DNA of 32,000 nucleotides from Paramicrosporidium saccamoebae KSL3 (lineage: Eukaryota; Fungi; Cryptomycota). The DNA is taken from assembly GCA_002794465.1 (NCBI GenBank), contig MTSL01000065.1, forward strand, positions 18,440 through 50,439. Direction: 5' to 3'. The notes beneath the pieces were generated by a model. That model was not told where the DNA came from, did no database searches, and saw only the letters and a list, made by a program, of their open reading frames with translations. Both the position numbers and the translations under genes were made by a program. Shown one piece after another: positions 2,818-32,000 of the stretch (positions are counted from its first letter, which is position 1; every line of letters starts with the position of its first letter).

Positions 2818-3534
2818 TTAGTAACCATATTTCCTTCGCTCAGCTTCCCGTTTGGCTCTTCTAGCAGCTGCATCAGAAGCTATTTCTGCATCTCTCTCGG
2901 CTGCAATTTCATCAGCAATTCTACTTCTACGAGCAATAGACTCTTTTTCCCACTCGGCAGCCTCGAGCTCGGCTTGTTCTTCAGCAGCCTGACGCTCAGC
3001 TCGTTCTTCAGCGGCCCTGCGCTCGGCTTCTTCTTCAGCAGCCTTACGCTCGGCCTCCTTTTTGGCAGCTTGTAGTTCGTTATATTTTTTCAGAATGGGG
3101 GCCACAGTAGGAGCAACCAGCTTTCTATAATATTCCGCATCTTTTACCTCTTCCTCGGCATCTTTGCTTTCGGGCTTTAGATTACGATTTTTCTGCAACT
3201 TGTCTCCCTCTTCCTCAGCATCTTCTACTTTGGGGCTTAGACCACGATCTCTCCACGATTTCTCTAGCTCCTCCATAGCTTTGGGGTCGGTGAGCGACTT
3301 GCCAGCGGCCTTATTTTTGGCCATCATTGCTAGCTGCTCTTTGCTTCTTTGCTCACGCTTAGCATCCTCTTCTACAGCTCTTTTGTAGTCTTCTTTCTTG
3401 GGGTATCTTCTTTTCAACATACCATCATACTGTTGTGACTCTAGAGTTTTCTCGGCTTCCTTTCCATCGACTTTCGCCCTAGAGGCAGTCGCGACACAGA
3501 CGAGCGCGAGGAAGACAGTGGCAGTAAGGTTCAT
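2818..3534 (-). CDS. Secreted highly charged helical protein, family S copy 3 (238 aa)
   Basis: Same signal peptide (MNLTATVFLALVCVATASRAKVDG). E/K/R/A-rich body with (E)AERxAAEE repeats at about 2960-3060, typical of coiled-coil or single alpha-helix segments. Confidence 0.85.
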   Translation of the reverse strand: MNLTATVFLALVCVATASRAKVDGKEAEKTLESQQYDGMLKRRYPKKEDYKRAVEEDAKREQRSKEQLAMMAKNKAAGKSLTDPKAMEELEKSWRDRGLSPKVEDAEEEGDKLQKNRNLKPESKDAEEEVKDAEYYRKLVAPTVAPILKKYNELQAAKKEAERKAAEEEAERRAAEERAERQAAEEQAELEAAEWEKESIARRSRIADEIAAERDAEIASDAAARRAKREAERRKYGY

Positions 3535-14865: not shown

Positions 14866-15109
14866 TGAGAAAGAGTATCTCTACCGATCGCAAACTACCA
14901 ATAAATAGTATTTACTGCAAACCTCACAGTATAAATCAGCTTTACTAGCAGCCTTAGAGACTTGAATTATACGTTTCATAAATTTTTCTCTTAAGGGCGC
15001 ACGTCAGCGTTACCTGGACTGACAGCGTTGACACTCAATTCCCGCCTATCGTCAACTATTAACCAGCGCCCACGTCTGACACAATGGCCCGGCCAAAGTA
15101 GAGCCAACA

Positions 15110-15546
15110 TGTCAGATGTGAGTGTTGGAAAGTCTAACTCGTGTCTTCATTCGTGAACGATCGCTAAATATCGACTCTTGAATCTCCCCTGCGAAATCTT
15201 GGTGTAGACTCCCGGCATTTTACTGTTTAGCTCTTTGAGAGAGCGGATTTTCTCCCTCATAAGCAGGAGTTTGATTATATCGTTTTCTGATGTTACTCGC
15301 CGCACAAAAATTATCTCACGCTGGGATTTTATCACGCCAATATCCCCATCGTGATTAAGCAGGGTTTTTTCCCCGGAATTCGCGGAAGTACCAGTGCAGC
15401 ACCGAGATCTGTACTTATGTCTTCGATGACGGCATTTATAGTCTGAGGTAAATTTAGAACAACCCGGGATTCTCAGTCCATGACCCATGCCTGAGGCCCA
15501 TGAGTTCCAGCTTCCCTGTGGCGTTTTTCGGTTGGAGAGCGTCCAT
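15110..15546 (-). pseudogene. Family B copy 0 (decayed)
   Basis: PQAWV, QTINAVIEDISTDLGAALVLPRIPGKKP and DIGVIKSQREII...NDIIKLLLMREKI...KMP align with the intact B copy but lie in different frames, with an in-frame TGA at 15473-15475. The RNxxxH position reads LDFPTL. Confidence 0.7.
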
Positions 15547-15701
15547 CCCTTGTACGAGTCTATCGCTGATACTTATACTCGTACCAATTTACCTAATTTG
15601 GAGCTTATCGTTCCAAAAGCATCGCAATCATGTCAAGTATTGACATTAGCTCTGCGGTCTTAGTTACTACACATTATAAGGAAATTACTGATGGCAATGC
15701 T

Positions 15702-16665
15702 TTATTGTGTGATTGGTGATGAATCTTTGTACGCCAACTCAAATTGACTCAACGAGAGTCGGAACAGGATGCGAAAGACTGTGGCAACCTCTAGTACCCT
15801 GATGGGAATCAAATCACTGACCGGATTCAATTGAGGCATCCTATCAACAAAGTCTGCCATCCTCTGGACATCTTCCCCGCGGACCTCAAGGATTTCTAGG
15901 ACACGTGTCCACTCGTCCTGGCGGTCCGCGTAACCATCTTGAAACTCGCGGATCCTCGCTCCAATGTGTAACAATAGTCCCCACCTGACCAGTCGGTCCT
16001 TGACTGTCAAGTAGCCGAATCTGAACAGTTTGATCCGTTGGAGGACTGCACTGATTTCGTGCGATGTCTGTGAGATGTGTATTCTCCAGCGTTCACCCGG
16101 AATGCGCAGTTTCGGTTTATAGGCCCACCATAGCACATTCGTGTTACTGAAAAACTCGCGTAGATCTGTGCAATTTTCGTATTGCTCCTCTGCAAGTGCA
16201 CGCCATGAAATGCGCGCTTCATCGGGACAAACTTTAATTCCAGTCACACGAGCCACCTCTTCTGCAAAGATGCTGGGGATTTCTTTCTTGCAGAACTGGC
16301 GATCTGGGAGCTTGCCACACCGGAAGGCTGCCGCCACTCCATACCCAGGCACGAAGTACATTATTTTAAACATGCCGTCCTCGACTCTACATCATAAGAG
16401 CGCTCTAATCCCAGTACCTCAACTCGGGCTCAAAAACATGGTCTTTAAAGAGCTCCACAAGCTTTTGCATGCGTGCTGTAAGAAGGATCTCGTTATCCTC
16501 TACACTAGCCCCAAGCAGCATGTTTTCAAGAAGCCGGAGAACCTTTTCTCTTTCTTGAAGGTCATCAAACCCAAAAGCCTCACATGTTTCGGTGTCAAAC
16601 TCCTTGCACACCCTCTGTTTCGCTGCGGTCTTCTTACCAGCTACGTTTTCAGTGTCTTTCTCCAT
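15702..16665 (-). CDS. Family A copy 1, unknown function (310 aa); exons 16665-16418 and 16386-15702
   Basis: A 31-nt GT-AG intron (16387-16417) joins two listed ORFs as ...PELR|VEDGMF, colinear with intronless copy 3. Confidence 0.85.
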
Positions 16666-16779
16666 TGTGTATTACCTACTTCCTCGGTGTTGGTCTGGAT
16701 GGAATTTTTGGGGACTTTCATCGGATCCTGATACACGTTTCATCTTTTTTAAGTAGGATTACTGGAACAGTCCCTCATC

Positions 16780-16999
16780 GTGACCAATCAATTTTCTTTC
16801 TGAAAAGTCTAAATGGGAGCTCGTATGGATCAATAGTAATTTGTCAGCCTAATGCTGGGATCGGATACAAACTCCATCATAGCTTCTCAAACGCTCTGTT
16901 CATTGAACAGCGGACGTCCTTTATCTTTTTTATCAACGATTGAATCCAGACTCGGGGATCTGACCTTTTGCGAGACTGTGCTTTTCTACCACCATCTAT
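16780..16999 (-). pseudogene. Family B copy 1 (truncated relic)
   Basis: ATA in place of the ATG; PRVWIQ, then a 1-nt deficit, then KGRPLFNEQSV*EAM..DPSI, with TGA at 16887-16889 where the intact copy has Trp; the rest is not recognisable. Confidence 0.75.
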
Positions 17000-17419
17000 C
17001 CTGCGATACTACCTCCTGTTATCTTGTGTCGCGTAGTGAGTAAATTACTACGGACTTTGCTACTGTTCTTTATTCGGGGGCAAAGAAGCTCTTATTGTTA
17101 ACCTGCAAGCTCTTTTATGGTTTCCCAAATAACGTATTAATCCTACAATATCCAGTTAATCTATTCATTCCATTACACACACATGTCTTCTCCAAACTAG
17201 GGAACTATTCCCAAATACCCAACTAGTCAATCCTCTACATCACACTTGTGCTATGTTGCCTCACTTATAATCGGTTCAAATTAAAGGACAGTACCGTAAT
17301 AAGAATGTGGTCAGGTGTGTTGTGATATTGTTCTTTGGATTATTCAAAGTGACATGCGTTGGTACTCTATTCGACAATTGCATGAGTGTTTTATTCATTA
17401 ATGGTGGGTTATTAAGGGG

Positions 17420-18374
17420 CTAGGAGGGGCACCTTGGAGCATCATATGCTAATTCGAAATCCCGTAGTGACAGCCGAAAGAGGACCCGGAACACAGTGAC
17501 AACCTCCAGCACTTTGATGGGAATGAGGTCGTCAATGGGATCTAAGCAGTCCATCCTGTTGGTAAACTCTAACATGGTCTTAATGTCCTCATCGCGGACA
17601 TCTAGGACAAGGAGAACGCGTTCCCATTCCTCAGGGCGGCCAGAGTACTCACGCTGAAATTCTAGAGCTTGTGACGCCGTGAGTATCACAATACCCCACC
17701 TTGTCAGTCTCTCCTCGACAGTGAGATAGCCCTCATTAAACCCTTTTATGCGCAGAAAAGCAGCGCTGATCTCGTAAGATGGTTGAGAGGAATGGCTCCT
17801 CCAACGTCCTCCCGGTCTACAAGTCTTGGGTACATAGCTCCAACCCATCAAACCACCGTCCAGGAAATAGTCGCTCAGGGCGGCATAGTCATCATGTTGC
17901 TTTTTTGAGCGTACGTTCCATGAGATATCAGTTTCATCAAGGGAGACCCTGATGCCGGTTATGCGGGCGACGTCTTTTGTAAGTCTATCCGGAATCTCTT
18001 CTTTGTTAAGCAATCCGTCCGGAAGCTTCCCACAGCGGAAGCCTGCAAATCCCTTGTTTGGCACAGAGTATAGAACAACCATTATTCCACTCTCCATTCT
18101 ATATCATAAGATCAGCTCAAATCGGATACCTTAGCTCCGACTCAAAGGTACGATCCTTGAACAGCTCCACAAGCTTGTCCATGCCTTCTAACGAGCTTTC
18201 AACAGTCTTACCGCTTGCACTGGGCATTACACTCTTTAATTTTTCCACGGCCGCATCTTCTTCTTCAAAGCTGTGGAATTCAAACGCAAGATTGGTCTCT
18301 CTCTCAAGCTCCTCCTCAACCTTTTCTCGAGCCGAATCGATGGAAACTATTGCAGTGTCAAAGTTTTTCGCCAT
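17420..18374 (-). CDS. Family A copy 2 (307 aa); exons 18374-18130 and 18098-17420
   Basis: 31-nt intron 18099-18129 at the same codon position; FRCGKLP, PGGRWR, GYLTVEERLTRWG and DLIPIKVLEVVTVFRVLFRLSL conserved. Confidence 0.85.
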
Positions 18375-18679
18375 GGCGCGCTATCCGCGATGGGTTGGGC
18401 TTAATTTCTGATACCAACTTTCTCAACCTTTGTGTCGAGTTTCATGTTTACCCAATTAGTCTATCAATACACTGGTTATATCCAATAAGCTCGTGGTCCA
18501 AAATTTGCAATGTAGAACTGCGAGGACCAATGGTAGAGGTGATAAAATACGGCTTGGCTTCCAGTACTTGTGTTGACAACGCAATATCGGCACATCTGCG
18601 CAATTTAGATGGCGCTTTACTTTTGTGCTTGTGGCTGTTTGCAGAGATCAAGTCATTACATTCCAAGACCAATGCTCAA

Positions 18680-19316
18680 GGCTTATACAAGAGTCCTGGG
18701 TTAAAGAGTTGGAGGCACCTGGGATTCTCATGCCGTATCAAGTGAACGGATGACAATCTTGAAATCTCGCTAAAGAGCACCTGTGATAGCTTGTCATAAA
18801 AGCTCTGGCGGCCTATTGTTTGATGATAGAATGCCACATTGAACTTGCTCCAACACGTAAAATTATAGACAAATTTTTTATCAGCTGTGTGCTATTTGAA
18901 ACTACCACTCTGTAGGATCCTATTGTCCAGGCCTTCAAACAGTTTTGATTGGGATTACCTACTCAACGTTCGGGCCTGGAATGCTGACCTCACTTAAGGA
19001 AGATCGTCATGCCACGCTCGAACATTGGGTGATGTATGATGTATTGGCAATAAGGCTTCTGTAGTTGTCGTAACAATTACTCCATACTGTTCCCCGATTA
19101 CACTTATGTCAGCGGAGAATTCAATGTCAGTGGTGCTCTTTCCCGAGATGACTGGACATGCAAGTCCAATGCTGGGATCGGCTGCAAGCTCTTCCACAGC
19201 TTTCTTGATTGTTTGCTTACCATATAGCGGACGCCCTTTCTTTTTCCAGAAACCGGCTGAACCCAGACTCGGGGGCTTGTTTTCATGCGGAGCTGAGCCT
19301 CTCTATCACCACCCAT
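18680..19316 (-). pseudogene. Family B copy 2 (frameshifted)
   Basis: MGGDREAQLRMKTSPRVWVQ, then a 1-nt deficit near 19240-19250, then KGRPLYGKQTIKKAVEELAADPSIGLAC...DISVIGEQYGVIVT; stop at 18994; a degenerate EISR-containing C-terminal remnant lies near 18680-18840. Confidence 0.7.
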
Positions 19317-19520
19317 CCCCGCGGTATTGTTTGCTGCTATTTTTATACTTGCATCATGTTGCCTAATTGGGAATCTGACTACGTCAAAGGGCAGCACCGC
19401 ATTAAGAATTTGGACAGGTGCATTGTAGCGCTGCTTTTCGCATTATGCAAAGTGTCAAGCCCCACTACTTTATTAGGCAATTTCACTCGTTGATGGTGAG
19501 ATAGCATGTGGCTAGGAGTG

Positions 19521-20513
19521 TCACATGGAAGCATCATATGCCAACTCGAACTGTCGTAAGGACAACCGAAAAAGGACTCGAAACACGGTCACCACCTCTA
19601 ACACCCGGATGGGAATGAGATCGTTGATGGGATGTAAACAGCTCATCCCGTCAGCAAACTCCAGCATGGTTTTGATGTCCTCATCGCGGACATCGAGGAG
19701 AAGGAGAACGCGTTTCCATTCATCGGGGTGGCCAGAGTACCCACGCTGAAATTCTCTAGCCCTTGATGCTGTGTGCATCACAACTCCCCACCTTGTCAGT
19801 CTCTCCTCGACGGTAAGGTAGCCTTTGCTGAACGTTTTGATGCGTTGGCAAACAGCGCCGATTTCGTGAGAAAGCCAAGAGGCGTCCCACCTCCAGCGCT
19901 CACCTGGCATGCGTGTCTTGGGAGCATAGTGCCACCCCAATAGGCCATCATTAATAAAGTATTCCCTTGGGCCGTCGAAATCTTCATAGTTCATCTCTGT
20001 ACGCACATCCCATGCAATACGGGTTTCATCGGGCGAAACTTTGATGCCGGCCATCTCGGCAACTTTACCTGCAAATATCTCTGGAATCTCTTTCGTGGTA
20101 AACGGAGAATCCGGTAACTTGCCGCATCGAAACATCCCGAAGCCGCCACCGGGTACATAGTACAATAGAGCGAACATCCCATCTTCCATCCTAAGCACTG
20201 GTTGGGGCATGCAGCCCTCGAATTTTTGTACAAGCATCTTCATACGTTTGGGCGAATCCTCAATATCTCCACAGTTCTTGTCAAGAATCATACTTTCTAA
20301 ATGTTTCAAGGCGCCAGCCTCTTCCTCCGGATTGCTGAACGAAAATGCAATGCAGGATTCTTTCTCAAAGTCATCTTCTATTGTTTGCATGTTCGTGGTA
20401 CCACAATCAACTAAAGCTTCATCATCCTTTTTCATTACTCTGCCAGTTTTCCGTCGGTTTGACTGCGCGGCATTCTTGACATTCGCTTTAACCAATTCTG
20501 CCGTGCGTTTCAT
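19521..20513 (-). CDS. Family A copy 3, intronless (330 aa from first ATG, 304 aa from the conserved MKKD start at 20435)
   Basis: Single ORF; reads PVLRMEDGMF with no intron at the site where the other three copies have one. Confidence 0.9.
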   Translation of the reverse strand: MKRTAELVKANVKNAAQSNRRKTGRVMKKDDEALVDCGTTNMQTIEDDFEKESCIAFSFSNPEEEAGALKHLESMILDKNCGDIEDSPKRMKMLVQKFEGCMPQPVLRMEDGMFALLYYVPGGGFGMFRCGKLPDSPFTTKEIPEIFAGKVAEMAGIKVSPDETRIAWDVRTEMNYEDFDGPREYFINDGLLGWHYAPKTRMPGERWRWDASWLSHEIGAVCQRIKTFSKGYLTVEERLTRWGVVMHTASRAREFQRGYSGHPDEWKRVLLLLDVRDEDIKTMLEFADGMSCLHPINDLIPIRVLEVVTVFRVLFRLSLRQFELAYDASM

Positions 20514-20805
20514 GCTTGTCCAATTGGGTTATCGATGCTCGCTATCGCGTCCAACAGGCCTACTGCCTAGGAGCCAATCAAGGGACTATGCGAACCAATA
20601 GCAAAGCTTGGATACCCATCATAGTAAACTTGAATACTGAAGTGTATGTTGTATTAGATCGAGAGCCACTTGCTATAATGTCATAAAAGCTGTAAAAGTG
20701 CATAAACATGAGTAAGTATATTTACGGGCGAGGGATTCTAGTCAGGGGCCTTTATTACAGGCCCCATTTTATTTTATTATATACAAGCTATTCGTTCTTT
20801 TTCAG

Positions 20806-21381
20806 TCATTGGGGAACCTCTTTAACCATGTGCAAATATGGGGAAGCATCCCATTTTAAGAGGTGCCTTCCAAGCTCCTTGCACTCATCAGGAATCGCCG
20901 AGAGATCAATGTCTCCTTCGGGTATTATATCAGGATCCGGGTGTGCTAAGCCGTTCCGACATCTCCGAAGTTGAGCAGCAATACTGTCAAACCTTGATAT
21001 GTCCTGAGTCTTAAGAACCTCGAGAAGCAAATTTGGAATCTTTTGCCTTGCCATGTCCAAGATGTGCAGCTTCTCAGTCACCAAGAGCAGGACATTAATG
21101 GCATCGCCCGGTGGCGATGCAGTCTTAGTAACAATCACGCCATGCTGAAGGCCTATGGTGCTGATGTCGTCGGCGGGTGAGATGTCTTGGGGTGCTTTAT
21201 CGGGTATCATGACACATGCCAGCCCAATACTGCGGTTAGACATGAGATCCGCTAGTGCGCTCCAAATGCTCTGAGCTCGGAATAACGGGCGTCCTGGGTC
21301 TTTGCGGCCAAATGACTTTACCCAGACTCGGGGTTGTCGGCTAGCGCGCGTGCAGTGTTTCCTTCTAGTGAATCTTTGCAT
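20806..21381 (-). CDS. Family B copy 3, the only intact copy (191 aa): putative Ubl/Crinkler-like header plus helical linker plus HEPN-like RNase motif
   Basis: Uninterrupted ORF; N-terminal PRVWVK...ISPADDISTI...VIV; C-terminal helical region with QLRRCRNGLAHP (R-N-x3-H). Domain names are inference. Confidence 0.75.
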   Translation of the reverse strand: MQRFTRRKHCTRASRQPRVWVKSFGRKDPGRPLFRAQSIWSALADLMSNRSIGLACVMIPDKAPQDISPADDISTIGLQHGVIVTKTASPPGDAINVLLLVTEKLHILDMARQKIPNLLLEVLKTQDISRFDSIAAQLRRCRNGLAHPDPDIIPEGDIDLSAIPDECKELGRHLLKWDASPYLHMVKEVPQ

Positions 21382-21606
21382 CTCGCACGGGGTTGTTTAC
21401 TGACTGCATCTTGTACTTGCGTTACGTTTCCTAATTTGGGCATATGAGATTATATGTCATGGGAGGAACACTTGTATGGATTTTACAGGCTGTAGGATTA
21501 CAATTTCGCTAGTTATCTAGCATTACTATGAAAACTCTTTAAGTACAATGTACAAAACAATATCCACTGCATATTGCCTTTGGTACTACAAATGGCTTAG
21601 GACAAC

Positions 21607-22560
21607 TCATGCAGTGATAGTATACGCCATTTCAAATTGCTGTAGCGACAGCCGGAAAAGAATTCGGAACACGGTCACTACCTCTAAAACTCGTATGGGA
21701 ATGAGATCGTCAATGGGATGTAAAAGATGCATCCCGCTGGTAAACTCTAACATGGTCTGAATGTCCTCCTCGCGGACATCGAGGACAAGAAGAACACGCT
21801 TCCATTCATCAGGACGGTTTGAGTAATCATCTTGGAATTCTTTGATTTCGGATGCAATGTGCATAACAAGCCCCCAGCGTGTAAGCCTCTCCTCCACCGT
21901 CAAATACCCCTCTCTATACATCTTTAAACGTTGGAACACTGCGCTAATCTCATGCGAGACTTGCGATCGGTGCATCCTCCATCGTTCACCAGGGATGCGT
22001 GACTTTGGTTCATAGTCCCAACCAAGAAGGCCGTTGTTCAGAAAAAACTCCCGTGGCTCTGAATAGTCTTCCACGTGATTATCAACGTTGATATCCCATG
22101 TTATACATCCGTCGCCAGGGGAGACTTGAATACCGGTAATCCGACCAATCTCCTTGGAAAATATGTCCGGCATTTCGTTTTTTCTAAAGGATTCCTCTGG
22201 CAATTTTCCACATCTGATAGCTCCCACTCCAAGATCGGGAATATAATAAAAGACACTTAGCATCCCATCTTTTACTCTACATTATGTGAGATACGCCCAA
22301 AACAAATACCTCGCCACCGGCTCGCTGGAGTAAGCGTTGAATCTTTGGACAAGTGTTTCCATGCGCGCAAGTAGATTCTCGTTATCTGCATCACTGGTTC
22401 CGACAAGCATTTCCTCGAGATGCCTGAGAGCACCTTTCTCCTCTTTAGAATGGTCAAATTCAAAATCAAACATGAGCCTATTCTCCCTGCGGAATTCACT
22501 CTTTACCCTTTCTCGGGCTGAAATCCCAGGATCTGGTACAATGTCAAAATCTTTCTTCAT
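21607..22560 (-). CDS. Family A copy 4 (306 aa); exons 22560-22310 and 22276-21607
   Basis: 33-nt intron 22277-22309, containing an in-frame TAA, at the same position; spliced junction reads PVAR|VKDGML. Confidence 0.85.
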
Positions 22561-30411: not shown

Positions 30412-32000
30412 ATGAACTTTACTGGTGTCGCTATCCTTGCACTTATCTGTGTCATATCCGCCTCTAAAATTGATGGGATTGAACTCAATTTGAGTGTCAA
30501 GGGTGAAATTGCAGACGCTGAGGCCAAAGAACAGGGTGGGCAAACGGGGTCCGAGCGGCAATTAGCGCCCCGAGAAGCTATGGGCCAAGCTAATATGAGG
30601 GATTACCGGGAAATAAAAGTAGCCCAAAATGTCAGAGAACAAACCAGACCGGGATACGACCGAGAAATAGCTCAATTCCGAAAATCTATGCGCCAGGCTG
30701 ATATGGAGGCTAAGGAGGAACGGAAAGCGGCCCAAGAAAAGAAGAACCAAGCTCATGCTAATGAAAAGAGGGGATACGAAGCTATGATGATGAACCCGAA
30801 GGCTAGTCAGGAAGATCTACGTAACCTAAAAGTGATCCATGGGGCTAACAGACGGGCCAGAGAGGCGAGTTTCAAAGCATTAACAGCGGCCCATGCAATC
30901 AATCATCGGATCAGACTTAAAACACTTGAAGAACTAATGGCGACCCAGAAAGCTGAGCGACAGGACAGAGAGAAGAAGCTTGGGGAACTAAAAGCGGCCC
31001 AGCATGGTGGAGAGCAGGCCAGAGTGAATGGCAGCCAGGAGCTGGTACAGCTCAAGGACGATACGGCAGCGTCGGATAAGAGGAAAAGAGAAGAGAGAAA
31101 AGCGGCCCAAATAGCTATACATCAGGCTAATCGAAAGGATGCCGAAGAACTAAGAGCGTTTCAACAAATGATGAGCCAAGCTGACGCGAGAGAAATGGAG
31201 GAGCGGAAAGCTATGGGCCAGGCTGATCCGAAAGCTTTAATAATGCTAGATAGGGCCCATAGGGCTAATAGATCTGCCAGACAAGCGAGACTTGGAGAAC
31301 TTTCAGCGGCCCAAAAAATGCGCCGTCTGAACAGAAACATCGAGTCTAAGGAACTACCAGCCGCCCTCACAAGTGGAAAACAAGACGGACAAAAAGAGCT
31401 CGAAGAAACAATACTAGCCCATAATGCTAAACAACAAGGCAGACCGGGAGATATTCAGGACTCGGCAAAATTTCAAGAATATACAGGCCGAGTTAATGAA
31501 AAGGAGAAAGAGGGACGAACTGTGCCTTATATAACTAGAACTCGGGCCGATAATAAGGAAAAGAAGGAATTCGACGCGGCCCAGCAAACTCTCAGCCAAG
31601 CTAATATAAAGGATCACCAGGAAATAGAAGCAACCCAAAATGTCAGAGAACAAACCAGAGCGGGGTACAACCGGGAGATAGCACAATTCCAAGCATTCAT
31701 GGAGCAGGCTGATAAGAAGGCTAAGGAGGAACGGATAGCGGCCACAGAGAATGAGCAACAGGCTAGAGAAGAGAGTGCTAAGGAGATAAGGGCGGCCCAA
31801 GGAAAGAACGACCAAGCCCATGTTAATGAAAGGAGGGAATACGAAGCTATGGAGGCGGACCCGAAGGCTGATCCGAAGGTTCTATATAACCTAAAGGTGA
31901 CCTGTGAGACTAACAGGCAGATCAGAGAGGCGGATTTCATGAAATTATCAGCGGCCCATGCAATCAATCATCGGATCAGACTTAAAACACTTGAAGAACT
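30412..32000 (+). CDS. Large secreted helical-repeat protein, family S copy 4; open to the window edge (>529 aa), absent from the ORF track
   Basis: ATG at 30412 after TGA/TAG; signal peptide MNFTGVAILALICVISASKIDG; I found no stop in this frame up to 32000; 18-aa periodic A/Q/E/K/R-rich repeats. Confidence 0.85.
   Translation, partial: MNFTGVAILALICVISASKIDGIELNLSVKGEIADAEAKEQGGQTGSERQLAPREAMGQANMRDYREIKVAQNVREQTRPGYDREIAQFRKSMRQADMEAKEERKAAQEKKNQAHANEKRGYEAMMMNPKASQEDLRNLKVIHGANRRAREASFKALTAAHAINHRIRLKTLEELMATQKAERQDREKKLGELKAAQHGGEQARVNGSQELVQLKDDTAASDKRKREERKAAQIAIHQANRKDAEELRAFQQMMSQADAREMEERKAMGQADPKALIMLDRAHRANRSARQARLGELSAAQKMRRLNRNIESKELPAALTSGKQDGQKELEETILAHNAKQQGRPGDIQDSAKFQEYTGRVNEKEKEGRTVPYITRTRADNKEKKEFDAAQQTLSQANIKDHQEIEATQNVREQTRAGYNREIAQFQAFMEQADKKAKEERIAATENEQQAREESAKEIRAAQGKNDQAHVNERREYEAMEADPKADPKVLYNLKVTCETNRQIREADFMKLSAAHAINHRIRLKTLEE
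30586..32000 (+). repeat. Internal duplication, about 30586-30935 versus about 31597-32000
   Basis: Offset 1011 nt, becoming 1065 nt after a 54-nt insertion; the last 52 nt (30884-30935 versus 31949-32000) are identical. Confidence 0.88.

Follow-up and report, generated by a model that had tools for sequence, protein, structure and literature searches.

A small Paramicrosporidium saccamoebae protein with a predicted ubiquitin-like domain and a likely HEPN-superfamily domain, encoded in a tandem two-gene array

Paramicrosporidium saccamoebae is an intranuclear parasite of amoebae belonging to the Rozellomycota (PMC5701793). In the 32,000-nt stretch of its DNA analysed here (the window), which is part of scaffold MTSL01000065.1 (assembly GCA_002794465.1), the open reading frame B3 is a real gene under purifying selection, and its product likely belongs to the HEPN superfamily, probably as a new family with a ubiquitin-like (Ubl) N-terminal domain. 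B3 lies in a tandem array in which it is paired with an orphan gene, A. The reading preferred here, for and against which the evidence seems about evenly balanced, is that B3 is a functional, small, non-secreted Ubl-plus-divergent-HEPN protein and one half of a duplicated B-A cassette with a conflict-like pattern. The gene and its parts are as follows:

20806..21381, minus strand: the B3 gene, an unspliced ATG-to-stop ORF of 191 aa (stop included), overlapping the annotated gene PSACC_00765
21328..21381, minus strand: residues 1-18, a tail at the N-terminus that varies within the family; its composition is polar and basic (7 K/R, no D/E), not hydrophobic
21121..21327, minus strand: predicted beta-grasp (ubiquitin-like) domain, residues 19-87, from the AlphaFold2 model and Foldseek
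20821..21108, minus strand: helical domain and candidate HEPN domain, residues 92-187, from the AlphaFold2 model; the sub-threshold Pfam HEPN matches of relatives fall here
21070..21075, minus strand: E103-K104 in the first long helix (E in 20 of 21 aligned sequences, K in 21 of 21), a candidate counterpart of the acidic residue that precedes the motif in HEPN sites
20938..20958, minus strand: Rx4H motif R142-N143-G-L-A146-H147-P148, where helix 128-145 passes into the low-confidence loop 147-155

An earlier, sequence-only reading of this DNA had described the ORF correctly: the ORF listing has it at the coordinates given, on the minus strand, and its translation contains both peptide stretches that had been quoted (PRVWVK ... 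ISPADDISTI ... GVIV in the N-terminal half, and DISRFDSIAAQLRRCRNGLAHPDPD).

B3 has few relatives. When 1.84 billion cluster representatives were searched exhaustively by HMMER, using a profile of three sequences, 31 proteins of 70-295 aa matched at E<=0.001; all of them belong to this one family, the B family. A word search with a 21-sequence B profile found family members only, even at E<=10, and HMMER profiles run against PDB sequences and sets of 5.8 and 1.84 billion proteins found nothing outside the family; matches of the B profile to MxiA/InvA and to a ligand-binding receptor among the PDB sequences, at E about 1, were judged spurious. None of the relatives has a Pfam domain or an informative name. 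JGI metagenomes account for every one whose source is reported; the contigs examined belong to samples 3300042203, 3300042204, and 3300042205, and one of them (L005) also has housekeeping genes of a eukaryote, for choline kinase, Mog1, and ribosomal S8. A pattern search of metagenome contigs for further B-like loci gave 152 matches, none of them confirmed. By these searches, the B family is small and lineage-restricted, with no HMMER-detectable link to anything named. One metagenome member (P0026, 295 aa) carries a second, partial B copy, consisting of the Ubl-like half and the first helix, fused behind its complete one; the gene call probably spans two tandem copies.

Conservation was assessed in an alignment of 21 sequences, 31-70% identical to B3. 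Five residues are invariant (K104, R142, N143, A146, and P148) and three more are present in 20 of the 21 (E103, R139, and H147), the sole exception at H147 being an arginine in P0042. At least 90% conservation is also seen at I73, G81, L108, P116, L118, L123, and W177; two of these, I73 and G81, fall in columns of the Ubl-like region and are kept in 19 of 19 sequences.

The sequence RNGLAH (20941-20958) had been proposed to be a HEPN-type R-(N/H/D)-x3-H motif at the end of a helix. The hallmark of the HEPN superfamily is Rx4-6H, in which the residue after the arginine is mostly N, D, or H (PMC3710099). In one sequence such a pattern is no evidence, because R[NDH]xxxH occurs six times across the six frames of the 14.8-22.7 kb region; what raises the B3 motif above chance, as judged from the alignment, is that 21 relatives only 31-70% identical have kept it. 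Conservation of RNxxxH in homologs had been named beforehand as a test of the proposal, and R and N are found in 21 of 21 sequences and H in 20 of 21.

The predicted structure places the motif where it would be expected. The AlphaFold2 model, built from the 21-sequence alignment, has a mean pLDDT of 82.8 and a pTM of 0.57 for the full two-domain protein; from three sequences the pLDDT reached only 40.7. In this model the helical domain comprises helices at residues 92-112, 118-123, 128-145, 165-176, and 180-187, with a low-confidence loop at 147-155. R142 and N143 close helix 128-145, and H147 opens the flexible loop preceding helix 165-176. The published position of Rx4-6H in HEPN domains is likewise at the end of a helix leading into a loop (PMC3710099). 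The location at a helix end, as modelled, agrees with what the sequence-only reading had claimed.

Comparison with family models gives a pattern of weak matches. When the 21 aligned B members were scanned against Pfam, there were 11 sub-threshold matches, of which eight were to five HEPN families: HEPN_Swt1 in four members (E 0.077-0.26), DUF4145 in P0027 only (E 0.0011; 19.5 bits, where the cut-off is 23.1), HEPN_Apea (E 0.019), HEPN_RiboL-PSP (E 0.046), and Abi_2 (E 0.24). All eight align the motif stretch with the corresponding C-terminal part of the profile, and span only about 25-55 residues around it. As a control, the weak Pfam matches of the partner family A include no HEPN family. No HEPN model reaches its curated cut-off in any of the 21 members, and B3 itself has no HEPN match in Pfam; taken alone, it has no meaningful match in Pfam, NCBIfam, PADLOC, or PDB sequences, and the B family as a whole finds nothing relevant in NCBIfam or PADLOC. 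Nor is there a HEPN chain among the best 50 Foldseek rows for either the PDB or the viral structure library BFVD; both searches used the complete model with its two domains, and Ubl domains make up most of what they list.

The resemblance to the HEPN superfamily (especially Swt1/Abi2-like and DUF4145-like families; PMC3710099) lies in particulars: an Rx4H motif with N after the R and a small residue before the H, its position where a long helix gives way to a loop, a candidate upstream acidic residue, and a domain of about 100 residues. Lineage-specific expansion, seen in some eukaryotic HEPN families, is seen in the B family too. The differences are a very short second helix, the form of the acidic site, and a proline fixed behind the histidine. 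Many HEPN families have a second conserved acidic residue, often as Ex3[KR] (Anantharaman et al., 2013, PMC3710099); in B3 the conserved glutamate belongs to the first long helix and has the lysine right behind it (“EK”), which is not the Ex3[KR] form. The helix following that one has only six residues (118-123), and this short element precedes the motif helix, while the last helix is divided into two (165-176 and 180-187). Because of the six-residue second helix and the “EK” in the first long helix, the mapping of the modelled domain onto the canonical four-helix HEPN core is uncertain. One possible correspondence, by analogy with the permuted KEN domain, is for helix 92-112 to be the canonical helix-2, with 180-187 replacing helix-1. 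Of the HEPN assignment as first proposed, the motif stands, conserved and placed as published, but no match to any HEPN family is significant.

The main alternative is that the helical domain is not an RNase at all. RNxxAHP might have a structural or binding role in an unrelated helical adaptor, for instance a Ubl-plus-helical-bundle co-factor resembling BAG1, or the domain might be an inert HEPN-like binder; some HEPN domains are known to be non-catalytic binders (PMC3710099). The want of a significant HEPN match by sequence or by fold is consistent with this, as is the proline immediately after H147, fixed in 21 of 21 sequences. Arabidopsis BAG1, which combines a Ubl domain with a helical bundle, ranks fourth in the Foldseek list, with a probability of 0.20 and an rmsd of 16. 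One argument against such a role is that the invariant positions are exactly the HEPN-catalytic ones (R, N, and H, with the upstream E), which is hard to ascribe to packing; another is that five separate HEPN families supply the commonest weak Pfam matches. On balance this alternative seems unlikely.

For the preferred Ubl-plus-HEPN protein, what we infer beyond the likely superfamily membership is a HEPN fold, RNase activity, dimerisation, and an effector or defence role for B3, together with a role for A. Residues 92-187 would form a divergent, previously unclassified HEPN-superfamily domain; by analogy with known HEPN enzymes, two copies of B3 might pair such that their R142-N143...H147 motifs, with E103, would make up an endoribonuclease site that needs no metal. 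The protein would be cytoplasmic or nuclear, with the Ubl domain acting in protein interaction or targeting. A partial precedent for the domain combination is vertebrate sacsin, a multi-domain protein with a ubiquitin-like domain at its N-terminus and, at its C-terminus, a HEPN domain of the HEPN-T family (Table 1 in PMC3710099). B3, by prediction, likewise has Ubl and HEPN in one polypeptide, but its two domains are adjacent within 191 residues, and no sequence relation was detected.

If the HEPN assignment is correct, the B family adds to the superfamily a new member family that escapes every current family model. B3 would in that case be, to our knowledge, the most compact Ubl-plus-HEPN architecture. 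If the assignment fails, what is left is still a lineage-specific two-gene array with a precise intron loss, and of modest interest.

The array itself extends over 15.0-22.6 kb of the window, with a period of about 2.09 kb; it has four units in which B copies alternate with gene A. The sequence-only reading had not recognised that B3 and A form a pair repeated in tandem. Besides B3, the elements of the array are:

21607..22560, minus strand: A4, the upstream paralogue of A3, in two coding parts split by a 33-nt GT..AG stretch
20514..20805, minus strand: B3-A3 spacer, with ATTGG (inverted CCAAT) at about 20595-20599, some 164 nt before the point where A has its conserved start
19521..20513, minus strand: A3, the downstream partner of B3 and a member of an orphan family; a continuous ORF of 330 codons, the sole intron-less copy
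19060..19287, minus strand: B2 remnant, the Ubl-like half only, 66% identical to P0028 over 58 aa, with no helical half and no motif
17420..18374, minus strand: A2, an A paralogue with the same two-part structure as A4
16815..16987, minus strand: B1 remnant without the motif; roughly 60 residues of the N-terminus remain, in two frames
15702..16665, minus strand: A1, an A paralogue, also of the same two-part structure
15057..15529 (outer bounds), minus strand: B0 remnant, interrupted, with the Ubl-like half and first helices in two frames

B3 is the only intact B gene here, B2, B1, and B0 being remnants. The motif had been said to be lost in B0, and this is so: B0 reads LDFPTL (15120-15137, minus strand) in alignment with the motif, and the histidine is replaced.

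Gene A consists of an N-terminal part of about 90 aa and a C-terminal part of 218 aa, divided at one conserved position; in the two-part genes these were compared separately. A4, A2, and A1 are 52-63% identical to A3. The dividing stretch is 31-33 nt long, starting with GT and ending with AG, and is found in A1, A2, and A4 as well as in three metagenome loci (L005:816-1758, L006:348-1290, and L009:1934-2897). Exactly this stretch is missing from A3, which looks, from the aligned copies, like a precise loss of an intron in one tandem copy. The start of A3 is probably the ATG at 20435 rather than that at 20513. ATTGG is found 160 to 165 nt before the conserved MKKD/MRIE start of A at six of six loci (A3, A4, L005, L006, L009, and L010), often with a second copy near -120, and this positional conservation suggests that A has a promoter element of its own.

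A word search with family A found 22 relatives, all from JGI and none from NCBI; because there is no NCBI protein among them, it follows that the public proteins of P. saccamoebae do not include the A genes. The locus table of the scaffold shows no gene other than B3 at 15700-22560. Among 25 sequences of family A there is no Pfam or PDB match. A nucleotidyltransferase function for A was considered and rejected, with no match to such a family.

In relatives, the two genes occur in the order B-A on L005, A-B-A-B on L009, and A-B-A on L010; next to the closest relative of B3 (L003/L004), a different ORF, not A, lies downstream. The B-A pairing is recurrent, then, but not universal. A second type of upstream neighbor exists as well: an ORF-like stretch unrelated to A (L007:1037-1270 and L008:1-216) is shared in front of two B genes from different samples.

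Under the reading preferred here, the cassette, with B followed by A on the same strand, would have been duplicated in tandem and would be diversifying and decaying fast; such turnover is the pattern that would be expected of a conflict system, whether between parasite and host amoeba or within the genome. A more specific interpretation is that B and A form a eukaryotic toxin-partner cassette (toxin and antidote, or sensor and effector), with the array as a selfish or defence locus. Same-strand adjacency of B and A, found four times in the window and again on L005, L009, and L010, is suggestive of this, as are the fast divergence of paralogues, the A copies being only 52-63% identical, and the decay of three B copies out of four; lineage-specific expansions of HEPN genes in eukaryotes have been tied to conflict (PMC3710099). 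On the other hand, A has neither a recognisable domain nor a nucleotidyltransferase signature, A genes outnumber intact B genes four to one in this genome, and the B gene of L003/L004 lacks a downstream A. The conserved element upstream of A also means that co-expression with B is not obvious. The toxin-partner interpretation is rather improbable.

A formal parallel is with prokaryotic HEPN-MNT pairs, which also place a small HEPN-type protein (putative in the case of B3) beside a recurrent partner gene. The B-A pair differs in that its partner lacks a nucleotidyltransferase or any other known domain, and in that its genes are eukaryotic, A having a spliceosomal-type intron as well as its own upstream element. 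In its fullest form, the proposal would be that the B-A cassette is a new two-gene conflict module of the Rozellomycota, pairing a Ubl-tagged HEPN ribonuclease with a partner of new fold and undergoing rapid tandem turnover. This is doubtful as a whole; if true, it would provide a eukaryotic counterpart of the bacterial toxin-partner loci. The host-interaction genes of this lineage, at the base of the Microsporidia, are essentially unknown; with B joined to an orphan gene in tandem arrays that evolve fast, this locus is a candidate for involvement in conflict.

The N-terminal half of B3 had been compared in the sequence-only reading to the ubiquitin-like headers of Crinkler/RHS-type effectors. 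Its first part has a predicted structure consistent with the comparison to ubiquitin. Residues 19-87 form a block with pLDDT 89-97 and a beta-beta-alpha-beta-alpha-beta order, made up of strands at 19-23, 31-33, 52-59, and 82-87 and helices at 39-47 and 73-78 (the latter short); in the model, this order is that of the beta-grasp fold. A Foldseek search of the whole model against 350,542 PDB chains gave no match at E<=0.001. Of the best 50 rows, most are ubiquitin-like domains, including every row with a probability above 0.4: examples are linear di-ubiquitin, the OASL tandem UBL, Ufm1, FAT10, and the Rad23 UBL. These matches are weak (E 0.15-0.6, probability <=0.89, 72-86 aligned columns), with target TM scores mostly about 0.3-0.55. 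In BFVD, most of the higher-probability matches are again ubiquitin-like proteins. Rows of low probability in both lists name animal-virus proteins, which were set aside. With these weak E-values, the predicted Ubl-like fold of the N-terminal domain is nonetheless the best-supported structural statement about B3.

The tail in front of this domain (residues 1-10, pLDDT 55) bears on export. A hydrophobic N-terminus is found in no member of the B family, so that there is no classical signal peptide, as had been proposed for B3 itself. Five of the 18 full N-termini begin with MG, and the tails are polar, variable, and often basic; they may include a myristoylation or nuclear-targeting signal.

The layout therefore invites comparison with the Crinklers (CRNs), whose N-termini, according to a review (PMC5289972), Zhang et al. 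(2016) redefined as Ubl headers lacking a true signal peptide. B3 as a Crinkler/RHS-type translocated effector would be a Ubl header with a toxin domain, delivered into the host amoeba. Its predicted Ubl-like N-terminal domain, putative nucleic-acid-targeting C-terminal domain, and absence of a signal peptide are laid out analogously, and its source is a eukaryotic, intranuclear parasite (PMC5701793). CRN headers, however, carry LxLFLAK on their strands, and in oomycetes HVLVxxP at their end (PMC5289972). Among 28 B-family sequences there is no match to an LxLFLAK-like or HVLVxxP motif. No Crinkler-named family appears among the Pfam matches of B3 and 20 relatives at E<=1, and Pfam presumably includes a Crinkler model. 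The B family also has one fixed C-terminal domain throughout, as opposed to the mix-and-match C-termini of CRNs, with no sign of export. This reading of B3 is very improbable: the ubiquitin-like part of the header proposal is retained, at the level of a predicted fold and weak Foldseek matches, while membership in the Crinkler/RHS group is not supported, and the architecture would be analogous only.

The public gene model for this locus differs from the one used here. PSACC_00765 has a span of 20806-21443 on the minus strand, and was one of just three relatives returned by a word-indexed protein search with B3, the other two being JGI metagenome proteins. Its product (P0001) is identical to the B3 ORF over the last 150 or so residues; the first 40 or so differ, coming from an upstream exon. 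The locus retrieved through P0001 (L001), when reverse-complemented, agrees at either end with 10806-31443 of the window. The residues that this exon displaces correspond to two predicted strands of the Ubl-like domain. The unspliced reading is matched by P0003, P0027, and P0031, and by the untrimmed L003 frame, which is 71% identical to B3 over residues 1-188. Because these relatives all match the unspliced ORF, the public 5′ model is probably wrong. The public annotation of this genome misses gene family A and probably mis-models the 5′ end of PSACC_00765.

Unbroken full-length homologues of B3 are found on L003, L002, L007, and L008. The Nei-Gojobori dN/dS for B3 against L003 is 0.20, with a dS of 1.04, and across the other measurable B-family pairs it is 0.19-0.30. 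The supposition that the ORF is a chance or decaying frame within a tandem-repeat spacer, and no gene, could appeal to the three remnant sister copies in the same array and to the different 5′ end in the public annotation, but is almost certainly wrong in view of dN/dS values in this range in every measurable pair, full-length homologues down to 31% identity, and a confident structure prediction.

A tRNA scan of the window found none. Elsewhere in the window, paralogous segments lie at 1103-1769, 1472-1566/3476-3570, and 2954-3081, and include the signal-peptide-like start of an ORF at 2818-3534, which is Lys/Glu/Ala-rich and has an internal 27-nt periodic repeat. At the other end, 30565-32000 contains two direct repeats of about 190-210 nt, 79-82% identical and about 1.0-1.07 kb apart, which suggests another tandem duplication at the window end.
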